Of a stretch of DNA of 64,000 nt, positions 365-55,751 are shown one piece after another. Numbering within the stretch: the stretch's first letter is position 1; the number at the start of each line of letters is the position of its first letter. Made by a program: the position numbers and the translations under genes. The stretch spans positions 62,001-126,000 of IMG/VR virus record IMGVR_UViG_3300042261_002385. One strand, written 5' to 3'. The notes under the pieces are model-generated. The model searched no databases, was not told the origin of the DNA, and saw only the letters and a program-made list of their open reading frames with translations.

Positions 365-934
365 ATGAAACTATTTTTATTTTTGTTCTTACTTATTAGT
401 CTAAATGTTTTTAGTCAACACTCGTTTGAAATATGTGAAAATTCAAATACGTTTACATATTCAACCACAATTGACTTAAACGGAACAGTAGAATGGTTTT
501 TAAACGGTAGTTCAATTGGTCAGGGTCTTTCAATTGATATCACATATGATGAACCTGGAGAATTTCAATTAGTAGCAATGGGTTATAACGATTTAGGTTG
601 TCCAGGAACACCACAAGTTTTAGATATTATAGTTACTCAATGTGATCCACTTATTTATTGGGTTCCTAATTCATTCACACCTGATGGAAATGAATTTAAT
701 CAAACTTGGGGTCCTATATTGACAAGCGGTATTTCAGTTAATAATTTTTCACTAACAATTTATAATAGATGGGGAGCTATCATCTGGGAGTCCAAAGATG
801 TCAATACTAAATGGGATGGAACATATGGAGGTTTTTTAGTTCCAGATGGAACATACTCTTGGATTATGAAATTAGATATGATAGACAATGATGGTAAAAA
901 ATTAATTACCGGTCACGTTACAATCGTTAGATAA
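365..934 (+). CDS. Secreted protein with gliding-motility-associated C-terminal (T9SS type B sorting) domain
   Basis: N-terminal signal peptide; C-terminal VPNSFTPDGN..N..W...IYNRWG..IWES...WDGTY.G..VPDGTY...GHVTIVR. Confidence 0.85.
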   Translation: MKLFLFLFLLISLNVFSQHSFEICENSNTFTYSTTIDLNGTVEWFLNGSSIGQGLSIDITYDEPGEFQLVAMGYNDLGCPGTPQVLDIIVTQCDPLIYWVPNSFTPDGNEFNQTWGPILTSGISVNNFSLTIYNRWGAIIWESKDVNTKWDGTYGGFLVPDGTYSWIMKLDMIDNDGKKLITGHVTIVR

Positions 935-935
935 G

Positions 936-1005
936 TGCCGTGTATGAGGTTCGAACTCACTTAGCCCACCTTATGAGAGTAGGTTCTTTTCCACTAAGCC
1001 ACGGC
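936..1005 (-). tRNA. tRNA-Met/Ile2 (CAT), possibly degenerate
   Basis: GCCGTG/CACGGC acceptor, CTACT-CTCATAA-GGTGG anticodon arm, GTGAG-TTCGAAC-CTCAT T arm; positions 7-9 appear missing. Confidence 0.6.
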
Positions 1006-1011
1006 TTTTAT

Positions 1012-2205: not shown

Positions 2206-2290
2206 TCGGTAGAGTGGGATTTGAACCCACGTCGTGATTTCTCACCTAGTGTATCAGACTAGTCCCTGAAGACCGCTCGGGTATCTACCG
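2206..2290 (-). tRNA. tRNA with Ile (GAT) anticodon and a long variable arm
   Basis: CGGTAGA/TCTACCG acceptor; CTAGT-CTGATAC-ACTAG arm; GTGA-GAAA-TCAC variable arm. Confidence 0.85.
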
Positions 2291-2824
2291 TAATCTTTCT
2301 AACCTTTTTTCTTCTTCTATATTATAATGTATTTCCCCATGGCAATTTCTACACACTAAAATACATTTATCAACTTCATTTTTTAATTTTTCAAAAGAAT
2401 GAGTTTTCCCACTTACTGAAAAATCTTTTTCTTTTGGGTTTCTATGATGAAATTCTAAAGATGATATACATTTATTATATCCACATAATTCACATTCACC
2501 ACCTTTATATTCAACTAGTCTAATCTTAACTCTTCTTCTCCATTCAATTACACTTTGAGAATTAGATTTTGATTCACTATAACTTCTATCTTTATACTTT
2601 TTGACAGTACTTATAGAAACGTTAAACTTTTCTGAAGCTTCTTTTATTGTATGTGTTTTACAATAGTTTTTTAACTCTTCTATATCAAATCTTCTTTCAG
2701 AATTTAATCCATATCTTTTACAATGATAACTAATTGTTGATTTTGATATGTTTAATTCTTTTTTTATTTCATCATAACTTTTACCTTCTTTTCTTAATTT
2801 TATTACTTTATCTTTAGTTTCCAT
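2285..2824 (-). CDS. HTH-containing HNH endonuclease (free-standing homing endonuclease-like)
   Basis: Two HTH-like segments, then CELCG...LEFHH...CILVCRNCHGEIH. Confidence 0.8.
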   Translation of the reverse strand: METKDKVIKLRKEGKSYDEIKKELNISKSTISYHCKRYGLNSERRFDIEELKNYCKTHTIKEASEKFNVSISTVKKYKDRSYSESKSNSQSVIEWRRRVKIRLVEYKGGECELCGYNKCISSLEFHHRNPKEKDFSVSGKTHSFEKLKNEVDKCILVCRNCHGEIHYNIEEEKRLERLR

Positions 2825-2963: not shown

Positions 2964-2984
2964 TTTTATTAACTATATCAAAAC

Positions 2985-3015
2985 AAAAAACCCTCAGATT
3001 TTCATCTGAGGGTTC
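2985..3015 (-). terminator. Intrinsic terminator (attenuator 1) upstream of tRNA cluster 1
   Basis: GAACCCTCAGAT-GAAA-ATCTGAGGGTTT followed by a U tract. Confidence 0.9.
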
Positions 3016-3045
3016 GTGTTATATTTAGTTATTATACGTCACATT

Positions 3046-3159
3046 TTACGAGACAAATTTTCTAAATAGATAGGAACCCTCAGAAGGTCTAATATTACAT
3101 AACGTAATATTCACCACATTGAGTGTCAGGTTCATCATATTTGTCGTATTTGTTCTCAT
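3046..3159 (-). CDS. Leader peptide 1, MRTNTTNMMNLTLNVVNITLCNIRPSEGSYLFRKFVS
   Basis: 37-aa ORF; first 24 codons use only the amino acids of the cluster-1 tRNAs; contains TCTGAGGGTTC, complementary to the terminator 5' arm. Confidence 0.85.
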   Translation of the reverse strand: MRTNTTNMMNLTLNVVNITLCNIRPSEGSYLFRKFVS

Positions 3160-3216
3160 TGTTGTTATATATTATAAATTATTAGTCTCTTTTGACTTTT
3201 TTGTCATTATTTTATA

Positions 3217-3248
3217 CAAATTTAAATAAAAGTTTTAATTCTACCAAA
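3217..3248 (-). promoter_or_regulatory. Bacteroidota-type housekeeping promoter
   Basis: TTTG-N20-TAAATTTG upstream of leader 1. Confidence 0.75.
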
Positions 3249-4615: not shown

Positions 4616-4653
4616 ATTTGTAAACAACTTTTTGTTATATATTAAATACCCGA

Positions 4654-6620: not shown

Positions 6621-6630
6621 TTATTTGATG

Positions 6631-6706
6631 TGGACCAGATGGGAATCGAACCCACCACACCTACCTTGCAAGGGTAAGTCGCCGAAGCCTTGGAACATGC
6701 TAGCCC
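6631..6706 (-). tRNA. tRNA-Ala (TGC)
   Basis: G3:U70 pair; TTACC-CTTGCAA-GGTAG arm; atypical D arm. Confidence 0.88.
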
Positions 6707-6782: not shown

Positions 6783-6793
6783 ATGTATTTCTG

Positions 6794-6874
6794 TCGGCAA
6801 GGTGGGATTCGAACCCACGTTTTCAACTTCCCGCTACGTGTATAGAATGTATAAGATTCCAACGGTACTTGCCG
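6794..6874 (-). tRNA. Non-canonical tRNA-like RNA with a TAT (Ile AUA) anticodon-like loop
   Basis: Perfect CGGCAAG/CTTGCCG acceptor and T arm; GGAAT-CTTATAC-ATTCT hairpin sits where the D arm should be. Confidence 0.6.
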
Positions 6875-6875
6875 A

Positions 6876-6909
6876 AATAAAAAAACCCAGTCCTTTTGAG
6901 ACTGGGTTT
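6876..6909 (-). terminator. Intrinsic terminator (attenuator 2)
   Basis: AAACCCAGTCT-CAAAA-GGACTGGGTTT plus U tract, directly upstream of cluster 2. Confidence 0.88.
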
Positions 6910-6930
6910 ATAAATATGTAAAGTCAAATA

Positions 6931-7014
6931 TTACATAACATAACTCAGTCTATAGACTTGACGCCCCGCGCCTGTCGCTATAAATCCAACTGATATGTTT
7001 GTAAAATTTTTCAT
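6931..7014 (-). CDS. Leader peptide 2, MKNFTNISVGFIATGAGRQVYRLSYVM
   Basis: ATA, GGA, ATA, GCG, GGC, GCG, GGG control codons; AGACTGAGTT antiterminator. Confidence 0.78.
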   Translation of the reverse strand: MKNFTNISVGFIATGAGRQVYRLSYVM

Positions 7015-7284: not shown

Positions 7285-7293
7285 TCTTTAAAT

Positions 7294-7323
7294 AAAAAAA
7301 CCCAATCTTTTCAGACTGGGTTT
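7294..7323 (-). terminator. Intrinsic terminator (attenuator 3)
   Basis: AAACCCAGTCT-GAAA-AGATTGGGTTT plus U tract. Confidence 0.88.
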
Positions 7324-7343
7324 GTTAAAAGTAAATCAAATAT

Positions 7344-7415
7344 TTACAACACGCAAACTAGTCCGATTGGATTACTACCCTCGGCTTCATAATAATATGT
7401 TGTTATCATTTTCAT
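7344..7415 (-). CDS. Leader peptide 3, MKMITTYYYEAEGSNPIGLVCVL
   Basis: TAT-TAT-TAT-GAA-GCC-GAG run upstream of tRNA-Glu and tRNA-Tyr. Confidence 0.82.
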   Translation of the reverse strand: MKMITTYYYEAEGSNPIGLVCVL

Positions 7416-12424: not shown

Positions 12425-12510
12425 CGGAGAGCAGAATACTCGAAACCCATGCAATTGAACGCACCCAACGCTTTCCAGGCGTGACTGATGACCTCATCAG
12501 TTTACTCTCC
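12425..12510 (-). tRNA. tRNA-Ser (GGA), 8/4 fold
   Basis: ACGC-CTGGAAA-GCGT arm; 8-bp acceptor, 7-bp D stem with 4-nt loop, 4-bp T stem. Confidence 0.82.
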
Positions 12511-12517
12511 AATTTAG

Positions 12518-12603
12518 CGGAGAACAGAGGAATTGAACCCCACACAAATGAACGTGCAACTCGCTTAGCAGGCGGTCCTAATCACCAGATTAGTTTATTC
12601 TCC
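12518..12603 (-). tRNA. tRNA-Ser (GCT), 8/4 fold
   Basis: CGC-CTGCTAA-GCG; CTAATC-TGGT-GATTAG D arm; G73. Confidence 0.82.
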
Positions 12604-12609
12604 ATTTAG

Positions 12610-12693
12610 CGGAAGAAGTAGGTGTCGATCCCAATACCTTTCAGTACCCACAGTTTTCAAGACTGGGTTGCAGGCCGCTGCAATTCATCTTCC
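12610..12693 (-). tRNA. tRNA-Ser (TGA), 8/4 fold
   Basis: CAGT-CTTGAAA-ACTG; TTGCAG-CGGC-CTGCAA D arm; G73. Confidence 0.82.
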
Positions 12694-12699
12694 AATTTG

Positions 12700-12772
12700 T
12701 GGTTCTAGAAGTATTCGAAACCTCACTTGATCGTTCGTAGCGACCTGTCCTGTCCAATTAGACGATAGAACC
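12700..12772 (-). tRNA. tRNA-Arg (ACG)
   Basis: GGTCG-CTACGAA-CGATC arm. Confidence 0.9.
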
Positions 12773-12780
12773 AAATTTAA

Positions 12781-12908
12781 CGGGGATGGTTGGACTCGAA
12801 CCAACGACCTTATAATTTCAAAATATACGAAGTAACTCTTTCAATCAACACTCTTACGAGGTAAAGTTTCAAAAGAGATAGTTTTCTCTACCACTGAGCT
12901 AAATCCCC
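12781..12908 (-). ncRNA. 128-nt tRNA-like RNA with a large structured insertion in the anticodon domain
   Basis: Near-canonical acceptor, D arm (GCTCAGTGGTAGAG) and T arm (GTTGG-TTCGAGT-CCAAC) flank about 55 extra nt. Confidence 0.7.
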
Positions 12909-12919
12909 AATAACATTTG

Positions 12920-12994
12920 TGACTCCGGTGGGACTCGAACCCACATATCCCTGATTAAGAGTCAGGTCCGGAAACCAATTACGGATACGAAGTC
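12920..12994 (-). tRNA. tRNA-Lys (CTT)
   Basis: CCTGA-CTCTTAA-TCAGG arm. Confidence 0.88.
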
Positions 12995-12999
12995 ATTTG

Positions 13000-13087
13000 T
13001 GCACCCAGAAGGACTCGAACCTTCAACGGACTTTCGTCTACCCCTCGCATTAAAAGTGCGATGCTCTACCAATTGAGCCATAGGTGC
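13000..13087 (-). tRNA. tRNA-Lys (TTT) with long variable arm
   Basis: TCGCA-CTTTTAA-TGCGA arm; 20-nt variable region containing GAC-GAAA-GTC. Confidence 0.85.
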
Positions 13088-13100
13088 TTAATTACCTTAG

Positions 13101-13173
13101 TGACCCCGGCGAGAATCGAACTCGCGACCCCCTGGTTAAAAGCCAGGTGCTCTACCTACTAAGCTACGAAGTC
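13101..13173 (-). tRNA. tRNA-Lys (TTT)
   Basis: CCTGG-CTTTTAA-CCAGG arm. Confidence 0.93.
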
Positions 13174-13216
13174 AAATTTTTTCTATGTGATGACTTATAA
13201 CTTAGTAAGCCATCAC

Positions 13217-13240
13217 TTAGCGTTTTCGTTTAGTTTCCAT
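13217..13240 (-). CDS. Candidate mini leader ORF METKRKR
   Basis: ATG GAA ACT AAA CGA AAA CGC TAA after an A-rich tract, followed by an 11-bp hairpin, upstream of the Lys/Arg tRNAs. Confidence 0.45.
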   Translation of the reverse strand: METKRKR

Positions 13241-13258
13241 TTTCTTTTTTATTTTTAG

Positions 13259-13329
13259 CACGTCGCCTAGGAATTGAACCCAGCCATCGAGGTTTTGGAG
13301 ACCTGACCGACACCTTGTCTGTGCGACGT
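13259..13329 (-). tRNA. tRNA-Trp (CCA), short D arm
   Basis: AGGT-CTCCAAA-ACCT arm, G73. Confidence 0.82.
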
Positions 13330-13336
13330 ATGTTTG

Positions 13337-13410
13337 GGTGAACGACGGGTTACGATCCCGCTACCTCTGGCTTCACAAACCAGCACTCTTCCGATTGAGC
13401 TACATTCACC
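13337..13410 (-). tRNA. tRNA-His (GTG)
   Basis: G-1:C73 pair; CTGGT-TTGTGAA-GCCAG arm; T loop ATCGTAA. Confidence 0.9.
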
Positions 13411-13415
13411 ATATA

Positions 13416-13487
13416 AACCCCACTTCACCAGGTTAACGGACTGGCTGCCATATGGGAGTGGGGGTCTCCTGTTATTCCAGGACTCCG
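13416..13487 (-). ncRNA. GC-rich structured RNA of unknown class, 3' of tRNA-Phe
   Basis: TCCTG/CAGGA, CCCCACT/AGTGGGG and CCAG/CTGG stems; possible ACGGA/TCCGT pseudoknot; strand inferred from context. Confidence 0.5.
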
Positions 13488-13560
13488 TGGAATGGGTGGG
13501 TATCGAGCCCACTCCTCTGGATTTTCAGTCCAGCGCAATTACCTAATCTGCCACCATTCC
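13488..13560 (-). tRNA. tRNA-Phe (GAA)
   Basis: CTGGA-CTGAAAA-TCCAG arm. Confidence 0.9.
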
Positions 13561-13573
13561 AATTTTTTTAAAT

Positions 13574-13607
13574 AAAAAAACCCGAACTTCTTTCGAGGTT
13601 CGGGTTT
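13574..13607 (-). terminator. Intrinsic terminator (attenuator 4)
   Basis: AAACCCGAACCTC-GAAA-GAAGTTCGGGTTT plus U tract. Confidence 0.9.
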
Positions 13608-13630
13608 AAATTATATTGTCTTTTATAAGT

Positions 13631-13732
13631 TTACACTTCTAAATTTGAGCAATACTCTTTTAGTACCGAACCAGTGGTGCTAAACCACGAAGTCGATTTA
13701 CTAAATGTGCTATGTTTGCGAATTGCTCTCAT
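13631..13732 (-). CDS. Leader peptide 4, MRAIRKHSTFSKSTSWFSTTGSVLKEYCSNLEV
   Basis: R/K/H/S/F/W-rich control region; GGTTCGG antiterminator. Confidence 0.85.
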   Translation of the reverse strand: MRAIRKHSTFSKSTSWFSTTGSVLKEYCSNLEV

Positions 13733-13789
13733 TTTTTTTATATATTGAATTGTTAAACTCTCTTTTTAAATTATTGTCATTATTCTATA

Positions 13790-13821
13790 CAAATGTAGAT
13801 AAAAGTTTTTAATCTACCAAA
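13790..13821 (-). promoter_or_regulatory. Bacteroidota-type promoter upstream of leader 4
   Basis: TTTG-N20-TACATTTG; closely similar to 3217-3248. Confidence 0.75.
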
Positions 13822-13835
13822 TTTTTTTGAAATTT

Positions 13836-14048
13836 TTATCCTCCATAAACATCAACTACTTTACCGTCTCTTACTCTGAAGTTGACTCTGTCCCCTCTAT
13901 TAGACATATCTAACATTTTTGGAACGCCATTTTCTTCTACTATTCTAGTGATAAAACCACCGTCATTAGCATACTTCGTAGCTTGTTCTAAAGTTTTTCC
14001 TACATATTCTTCTTTACTAATGATACCATTGTTTCTTAATTGTGCCAT
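13836..14048 (-). CDS. Small protein resembling the I78/potato-inhibitor-I protease inhibitor fold
   Basis: YVGKTLEQA...RIV..G...LDM...DRVNFRVRDGKVVDVYGG. Confidence 0.55.
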   Translation of the reverse strand: MAQLRNNGIISKEEYVGKTLEQATKYANDGGFITRIVEENGVPKMLDMSNRGDRVNFRVRDGKVVDVYGG

Positions 14049-14095
14049 AAGATTTAAATTATTTTTTTTAATATATAGTAAAAATTAATTTCTTT

Positions 14096-14387: not shown

Positions 14388-14813
14388 TTATCCTATTTTG
14401 GTTTTGACAACTTCTGATACAATTTTCTTATCAACCGGTAGTTGCGCGAATTCTTTCATTATTTGACCTATCTGTGTTATGCCGTTTGCTATGAGTTCGT
14501 CTACTTTTGATTCAATCTCTAACTTGGTCATTTGTTTTGGTAGATAAGATTCGATTATTGCTAACTCAGCACAAGCTTGAACTATATCTTCACCTTTACC
14601 ATCAATTGGTGCTAATGATTTAATCGTTTCTTTCAAAGATTTTGATGCTTTGATTAAAATTTTTAAAACATCTTCATCGGAAAGATTTTCGACTCCAGTA
14701 TTTTTTTCGGCAGTTTGAATTTCTCCTTTGACTACAGAAAGTAAATTTTTGGTAACAGTATTCTTCATTTTGAATGCTGTCATGTAGTCTTTGTTAATTT
14801 GTTCTTTTATCAT
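14388..14813 (-). CDS. yqeY: GatB/YqeY domain protein
   Basis: IKEQINKDYMTAFK...ELAIIESYLPKQM...IGQIMK. Confidence 0.88.
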   Translation of the reverse strand: MIKEQINKDYMTAFKMKNTVTKNLLSVVKGEIQTAEKNTGVENLSDEDVLKILIKASKSLKETIKSLAPIDGKGEDIVQACAELAIIESYLPKQMTKLEIESKVDELIANGITQIGQIMKEFAQLPVDKKIVSEVVKTKIG

Positions 14814-15243: not shown

Positions 15244-15274
15244 CAAATATAGATATTATTTTTTAATAAACAAA
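15244..15274 (-). promoter_or_regulatory. Bacteroidota-type promoter driving the structured region and yqeY
   Basis: TTTG-N19-TATATTTG. Confidence 0.65.
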
Positions 15275-15293
15275 TATTTAATATATAATCTGT

Positions 15294-43149: not shown

Positions 43150-43338
43150 TTATATATTAAATAACCTCCTTATAGTTTCTTTTCTACTTTTAGATCTTTC
43201 AAAACTTTTATGAAGAGTCTTCCAAGCTTCTAAGGAAGCAGTTGACCAACTTGCACCACTTTGTCTTGATTTACCTAATATAATTTGTTTATTACCATTA
43301 AGTAGTTTTCCAAATATTTCTAAAGTCTCTTTATTCAT
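43150..43338 (-). CDS. Small hypothetical protein
   Basis: ORF in operon. Confidence 0.55.
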   Translation of the reverse strand: MNKETLEIFGKLLNGNKQIILGKSRQSGASWSTASLEAWKTLHKSFERSKSRKETIRRLFNI

Positions 43339-55553: not shown

Positions 55554-55751
55554 ATTTTTATATATTAAAAAATCTCCTCCTTTATCCTAAAAATTACTCA
55601 AATTCATAAAAGCCAATTTCTTTTAATTTTTCTTTCATCTCATGTTCGTCTTTTGTTAAGCCAACAATATCACAAACTTGATTAGATATACCATCAAATT
55701 CCTAAATCGTAAGTTTTATTACTTTGATTAGTAAACAAACTAAATAACTTT

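Follow-up and report, generated by a model that had tools for sequence, protein, structure and literature searches.

A leader-peptide attenuator proposed to control a block of tRNA genes in a huge phage

A huge phage places a 33-codon open reading frame and a transcription stop signal in front of a block of tRNA genes for Phe, His, Trp, Lys, Arg and Ser, and the control stretch of this leader is built from the codons which those tRNAs read, so that the phage probably makes more of these tRNAs only when ribosomes run short of them. The element was analysed within a stretch of 64,000 nucleotides (hereafter the window), in which all tRNA genes lie on the minus strand. An earlier note had proposed, from the letters alone, an attenuator in which 12 of the 14 codons at positions 5-18 match downstream anticodons and in which GGTTCGG is complementary to the terminator arm CCGAACC. 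This observation is correct in every detail and its interpretation is supported in silico, although the note's link to anticodon nucleases such as PrrC is a suggestion without evidence in the sequence. There are no expression data of any kind, and translation of the leader, its coupling to transcription, termination at the hairpin and the response to charged tRNA are inferred from anatomy, conservation and covariation. The features are listed in Table 1.

Table 1. Positions of the leader, its pairing regions, the downstream tRNA block and neighbouring features in the window
Feature	Position	Strand	Description
Promoter-like site of the Bacteroidota type	13790..13821	-	TTTG (13821..13818), a 20-nt spacer, TAcaTTTG (13797..13790); inferred transcription start near 13783
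Upstream box	13738..13753	-	AATATATAA, ending 5 nt before the ATG
Leader ORF	13631..13732	-	33 codons plus TAA (ATG 13732, TAA 13633..13631); encodes MRAIRKHSTFSKSTSWFSTTGSVLKEYCSNLEV
Control codons 5-18	13679..13720	-	CGC AAA CAT AGC ACA TTT AGT AAA TCG ACT TCG TGG TTT AGC (R K H S T F S K S T S W F S)
Region 1	13693..13705	-	UUUAGUAAAUCGA, the F-S-K-S codons
Region 2	13650..13672	-	GGUUCGG (13672..13666), UACUAAA, GUAUUG (13655..13650)
Region 3	13597..13618	-	CAAUAU (13618..13613) and the terminator 5' arm containing CCGAACC (13603..13597)
Intrinsic-terminator-like hairpin and U-run	13574..13607	-	Hairpin 13607..13578, beginning 23 bases after the stop codon; seven T residues at 13580..13574; ends 14 nt before tRNA-Phe
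tRNA block	12517..13560	-	Phe(gaa), unassigned 77-nt spacer, His(gtg), Trp(cca), Lys(ttt), Lys(ttt), Lys(ctt), tRNA-like gene with an insert, Arg(acg), Ser(tga), Ser(gct)
Possible Ser(gga)	12426..12507	-	
Unassigned spacer	13410..13486	-	77 nt between tRNA-Phe and tRNA-His
tRNA-like gene with an insert	12780..12909	-	About 55 extra bases in the anticodon region
Unit A1	2984..3248	-	Leader MRTNTTNMMNLTLNVVNITLCNIRPSEG...; promoter-like motif 3245..3213; terminator 3015..2988; Asn, Ile, Arg(tct), Leu x3, Val, Cys, Thr
Unit A2	7293..7415	-	Leader MKMITTYYYEAEG...; terminator 7323..7298; Glu, Tyr
Unit A3	6878..7014	-	Leader MKNFTNISVGFIATGAG...; terminator 6909..6883; Ile(tat), Gly x2, Ala
TAATATATAA boxes before genes	4635..4650, 14071..14086, 15273..15288, 43150..43165, 55558..55573 and others		
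tRNA genes missed by default annotation	933..1008, 6630..6706, 6793..6874, 12426..12693, 13258..13329	-	Met, Ala(tgc), Ile(tat), three Ser, and Trp
ORF inside tRNA cluster 1	2285..2824	-	179 aa
YqeY-like protein gene	14391..14813	-	Pfam PF09424, E = 5e-19

Within the leader, the two control codons which are not read by the downstream tRNAs are the Thr codons ACA and ACT. tRNAs of this cluster read 25% of codons in the long ORFs of the window, yet among 329 mechanical ATG-ORFs of 20-45 codons only this ORF reaches 12 of 14 in any 14-codon stretch, and only 3 cover all six amino acids. The same holds for the three other leader ORFs in the window against their own clusters (1, 2 and 1 of 329). 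The tRNA assignments differ in strength, as Phe(gaa), His(gtg), both Lys(ttt), Lys(ctt) and Arg(acg) are found by default ARAGORN and Rfam, while Trp(cca), Ser(tga), Ser(gct) and the possible Ser(gga) appear only with relaxed ARAGORN or sub-threshold Rfam scores. The Trp and Ser(tga) genes share the anticodon loop of tRNAs that default ARAGORN calls in relative L001 (fetched loci are numbered L001-L162). No further terminator-like site was found inside the block down to about 12517.

The promoter-like site lies between the leader and the immediate upstream gene, which ends at 13836. It is part of a 33-nt motif found only twice in the window, here and before leader A1, against 0 expected by chance, and it is conserved upstream of the homologous leaders in L001, L002, L005 and L010-L014. 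The motif reads TTTG, 20 nt, TAnnTTTG, which appears to correspond to the -33/-7 promoter consensus of Bacteroidota. A scan for the sigma-70 consensus was uninformative (75 sites found against 71.5 expected). The box before the ATG also lies 4-18 nt upstream of the start codons of ordinary genes of this phage (starts at 15294+, 55553-, 14048-, 4627- and 43131-) and of leader A1, with 22 matches in the window against 10.3 expected, and it is present before nearly all leaders in relatives, so the leader has a normal gene start. This box may be a generic phage promoter giving near-leaderless mRNAs, or a translation-initiation signal in a host without Shine-Dalgarno use.

The RNA has the three-way design of the trp and his attenuators. 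The free leader folds into a hairpin between region 1 and region 2 (GGUUCGGUACUAAA) together with the terminator (-43.2 kcal/mol, z = -3.96). The terminator hairpin is about -15 kcal/mol. When the 3' arm of the terminator is left out, region 2 pairs instead with the 5' arm of the terminator, GGUUCGG with CCGAACC, and this pairing is extended by GUAUUG with CAAUAU. The same pairing forms when the 5' part is also masked, as a stalled ribosome would do. The stop codon lies in the apical loop of this antiterminator, and a ribosome that reaches the stop should therefore hinder its closure.

Homologues were sought with a pattern spanning F-S-K-S-x-x-W-F-S, which found 10 stretches in viral contigs, 82 in metagenome contigs (freshwater and marine) and one in cellular genomes. 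Of 94 pattern hits, two were chance matches inside coding sequence, namely the metagenome hit L053 and the single cellular hit L099, which lies in a cyanobacterial coding sequence, and the scan thus gives no evidence for or against such leaders in cellular genomes. Of the 92 real homologous loci, 91 have an intact ORF of 29-39 codons, and one real leader lacks an in-frame ATG. This one class is common in freshwater and marine metagenomes, with 80 real loci among the 82 hits. L006 and L008, from a 436-kb IMG/VR contig, show the same sequence as the window in the stretches read. The closest GenBank record is an unannotated 634-kb uncultured phage genome, LR745206.1, and the nearest phage record has the same layout, with the leader MTTNSTHKNFSKSHKWFSNQSFGTESVLSLN followed by a terminator with the same CCGAAC/GUUCGG arms and then tRNAs His, Phe, His, Phe, Trp and Lys.

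In an alignment of the 75 distinct homologues, the terminator forms in 75/75, the 1:2 hairpin is in the minimum-energy fold of 74/75, the 2:3 antiterminator forms on masking of the 5' part in 75/75, and the stop codon lies inside the antiterminator loop in 75/75. The terminated conformation is 96.3% paired, with 93 cells changed on both sides, whereas slid controls give 18-53%. The terminator helix is 98.1% paired and 5 of its 9 pairs show changes on both sides. The 1:2 helix appears in the RNAalifold consensus and is 94.8% paired, but the absence of changes on both sides in this helix, like the conservation of the F-S-K-S and W-F-S codons, follows from how the set was built, given that the pattern fixes these positions. 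In the antiterminator core, pair 67-172 is UA in 56 and CG in 16 sequences, and pair 69-170 is CG in 59 and UA in 16, although the 16 compensatory sequences probably reflect few evolutionary events. Region 2 follows the terminator arm in five sequence classes, GUUCGG with CCGAAC, GAUUCGG with CCGAAUC, ACUUGG with CCAAGU, GGUUCUGAU with AUCUGAAUC, and GGUUCGG with CCGAGC, and in the ACUUGG/CCAAGU class it still pairs with region 1 through G-U pairs. Interestingly, sub-families read region 2 in different frames (for example ...FGTESVL... compared with ...GSVLKEY... in the window) while its nucleotides are conserved, and this part is therefore constrained as RNA and not as peptide.

The pattern fixes codons 10-13 and 16-17 and two bases of codon 18, so only codons 5-9, 14 and 15 are informative on the codon alphabet. 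At these free positions 75% of codons in the homologues are read by the tRNAs of the cluster, against the 25% background. Codon 14 is Ser through all six Ser codons, or else Phe, His, Asn or Thr, codon 15 is Lys, Ser or Phe, and changes such as AAG to TCT keep the alphabet while changing two or three bases. No excess of synonymous or third-position change was found in the free codons (29% synonymous among single-base differences), and there is thus no classical coding signature, which fits a peptide whose sequence as such does not matter; selection seems to act on codon class and RNA pairing.

Where enough downstream sequence was present, His, Phe, Trp and Lys tRNAs follow the homologous leaders in varying order, and Ser and Arg(acg) lie in the same block or behind a second terminator. 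In many relatives Arg(acg) and most Ser tRNAs sit behind this second terminator with its own S/R-rich leader, for example MKTIINTSSSSSSSRSSKMSEVRSCS, yet the first leader keeps its Ser codons and often a CGY codon, an observation which does not fit neatly. The window and L014 lack the internal terminator. We examined whether the Arg codon CGC at codon 5 appears only where tRNA-Arg(acg) is not behind its own second attenuator, and this failed, as L022, L025, L036, L040, L046, L059 and L083 have CGY and also an internal terminator. In L002, L010 and L011, the first gene after the attenuator is a tRNA-His-like sequence (anticodon loop CUGUGAA) with a long insertion in the D-arm region, which ARAGORN cannot type.

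The window holds three more units of the same build (A1, A2 and A3), all showing the same terminator/antiterminator alternative, and relatives have at least six leader classes. Relatives add a P/Q/D class before Gln, Pro and Asp, a Q-run before two tRNA-Gln, and a merged class, for example MRTIINIEAIGYAYEAG..., before a merged block of Tyr, Glu, Ile, Gly and Ala. A generic pattern (the box plus ATGANAACAA) was too loose, giving 119 or more mostly unrelated loci, and was useful only after filtering for a terminator followed by a tRNA. Codon choice is specific, as Arg is AGA before the Arg(tct) cluster but CGC before Arg(acg), and Ile is ATT before Ile(gat) but ATA before Ile(tat). The true assignment of leaders to clusters is the best of 5040 permutations. 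In 101 distinct units the own-cluster match has a median of 0.44, against 0.07 for clusters sharing no tRNA type, and own exceeds cross in 100 of 101, the exception being a wrongly chosen ATG. All leader classes nevertheless begin with M-(R/K/T)-T-(I/N)-(N/I), codons read by the tRNAs of cluster 1 (Arg-tct, Thr, Ile, Asn), which could reflect common descent by duplication, a preference for A-rich codons after the start, or a shared second input.

Given these observations, we consider ribosome-mediated transcription attenuation, controlling read-through into the tRNA cluster, to be the likely explanation. In this proposal, transcription starts at a promoter upstream of 13780 and ribosomes translate the leader while RNA polymerase moves on. 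If charged tRNA-His, -Lys, -Phe, -Ser, -Trp and -Arg(ICG) are plentiful, the ribosome runs to the stop codon, region 1 re-pairs with region 2 behind it, the terminator hairpin forms, and transcription stops before tRNA-Phe. If any of these charged tRNAs is scarce, the ribosome stalls on codons 5-18 and covers region 1, region 2 is free to pair with region 3, the terminator cannot form, and the tRNA genes are transcribed. Because the products are the very tRNAs that relieve the stall, the unit would act as a negative-feedback controller of tRNA supply during infection.

An RNA-only or factor-dependent switch, in which the alternative pairings are real but are set by a phage or host RNA-binding protein or by direct binding of uncharged tRNA, and the ORF is incidental, appears unlikely. 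It is favored by the very strong nucleotide conservation of regions 1 and 2, by the conservation of region 2 across reading frames and by the lack of a synonymous-site excess. However, no T-box or any other Rfam leader family matches at the gathering threshold or at E <= 1, the only overlapping hit being a chance-level IS128 match (24.6 bits against a cutoff of 80). Moreover, a non-translational switch does not explain the intact ORF, the constant position of the stop codon inside the antiterminator loop, the restriction of variable positions to the alphabet of the downstream tRNAs, or the match of at least six unrelated control stretches to their own clusters. Still more doubtful is an independent micro-protein or small-RNA gene, with the tRNAs expressed from elsewhere or by leaky read-through and the codon match a by-product. 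The shared N-terminal module and the upstream box of ordinary genes speak for it, but there is no room for a promoter in the 14 nt between the U-run and tRNA-Phe, the C-terminal halves differ by frame between sub-families while the RNA is conserved, the composition tracks the downstream tRNAs in every class, including merged clusters, and the overlap of region 2 with the terminator arm covaries. A processing or stabilising structure of the tRNA precursor, or the end of the upstream gene's transcript, is equally improbable. Hairpins of the form AAACCC...GGGUUU plus a U-run do recur before tRNA blocks and in unit A2 a promoter-like TTTG..TAtcTTTG lies between the terminator and tRNA-Glu, but a promoter-like site separates the upstream gene from the leader, and a competing, covarying antiterminator and a matched control ORF are not expected for a simple processing signal.

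Classical leader-peptide attenuators of amino-acid biosynthesis operons in Proteobacteria (trpL, hisL, pheL, leuL, thrL, ilvL) likewise have a short ORF with regulatory codons, a 1:2 hairpin overlapping those codons, a 2:3 antiterminator competing with a 3:4 intrinsic terminator, and a stop codon placed so that an unimpeded ribosome prevents antitermination. Here, the genes downstream are tRNA genes and not biosynthetic enzymes, so the product relieves a shortage of tRNA rather than of amino acid, the control stretch mixes five or six amino acids instead of a run of one (thrL and ilvL mix two or three), the element is phage-encoded with Bacteroidota-type promoter features, and there is no sequence similarity to the Rfam leader families. 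The closest functional analogue is the pheM-pheST attenuator of E. coli, which also stands before a component of the translation apparatus and responds to the level of a charged tRNA, but which controls a synthetase through a single amino acid (Phe), whereas several tRNAs would be read out at once here. T-box riboswitches also report on tRNA status by a terminator/antiterminator choice, but they bind uncharged tRNA directly through a specifier codon and the T-box sequence, need no translation, and regulate synthetase, biosynthesis and transport genes. Dense tRNA blocks interspersed with odd small RNAs and a homing-endonuclease-like gene are known from large phages (T4, T5, huge phages of the Al-Shayeb et al. 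type), but to our knowledge no codon-matched leader ORF with a terminator has been described for any phage or cellular tRNA cluster, although our full-text searches covered few subscription journals and an older report cannot be excluded. Naville & Gautheret 2010 (PMC2965389) does not mention tRNA genes.

Why large phages carry dozens of tRNA genes, and how they dose them, is an open question, and a leader that reads out ribosome speed on specific codons would be a direct feedback mechanism. It would extend leader-peptide attenuation to RNA genes, to phages and probably to Bacteroidota-type hosts, and would be a natural multi-input sensor, with up to six tRNAs read by one leader. The element is modular, and could possibly serve as a set of codon-specific translation-stress reporters. 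It can also be speculated, although we regard this as less likely than not, that the attenuators are a codon-resolved alarm for loss of host tRNAs. When host tRNAs are cleaved by anticodon nucleases or other tRNA-targeting defences, or decay after phage-induced host shut-off, ribosomes would stall on the matching leader and switch on exactly the replacement tRNA block, so that tRNA-rich phages would carry an inducible counter-defence and not just a constitutive codon-usage supplement.

The two unassigned stretches inside the cluster do not fold better than shuffled sequence. The 77-nt spacer has no tRNA call and its core 17-mer recurs in only two other fetched loci (L020, L090), besides L006, which is the window's own contig, and it could be a small stable RNA or a decayed tRNA. 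The tRNA-like gene with an insert has normal acceptor, D and T arms, and ARAGORN calls it either an intron-containing tRNA or a short Ser(tga). Given that several tRNA genes of the window are missed by default ARAGORN and by Rfam gathering thresholds, default annotation undercounts the tRNA set of this phage. The ORF inside tRNA cluster 1 has N-terminal helix-turn-helix domains and a weak, below-cutoff HNH match, and looks like a homing endonuclease, as found in the T4 tRNA region. Other nearby genes encode an NAD-dependent ligase, an SbcC-like ATPase and, close to the tRNA cluster, the YqeY-like protein, whose family has a presumed translation-related role.
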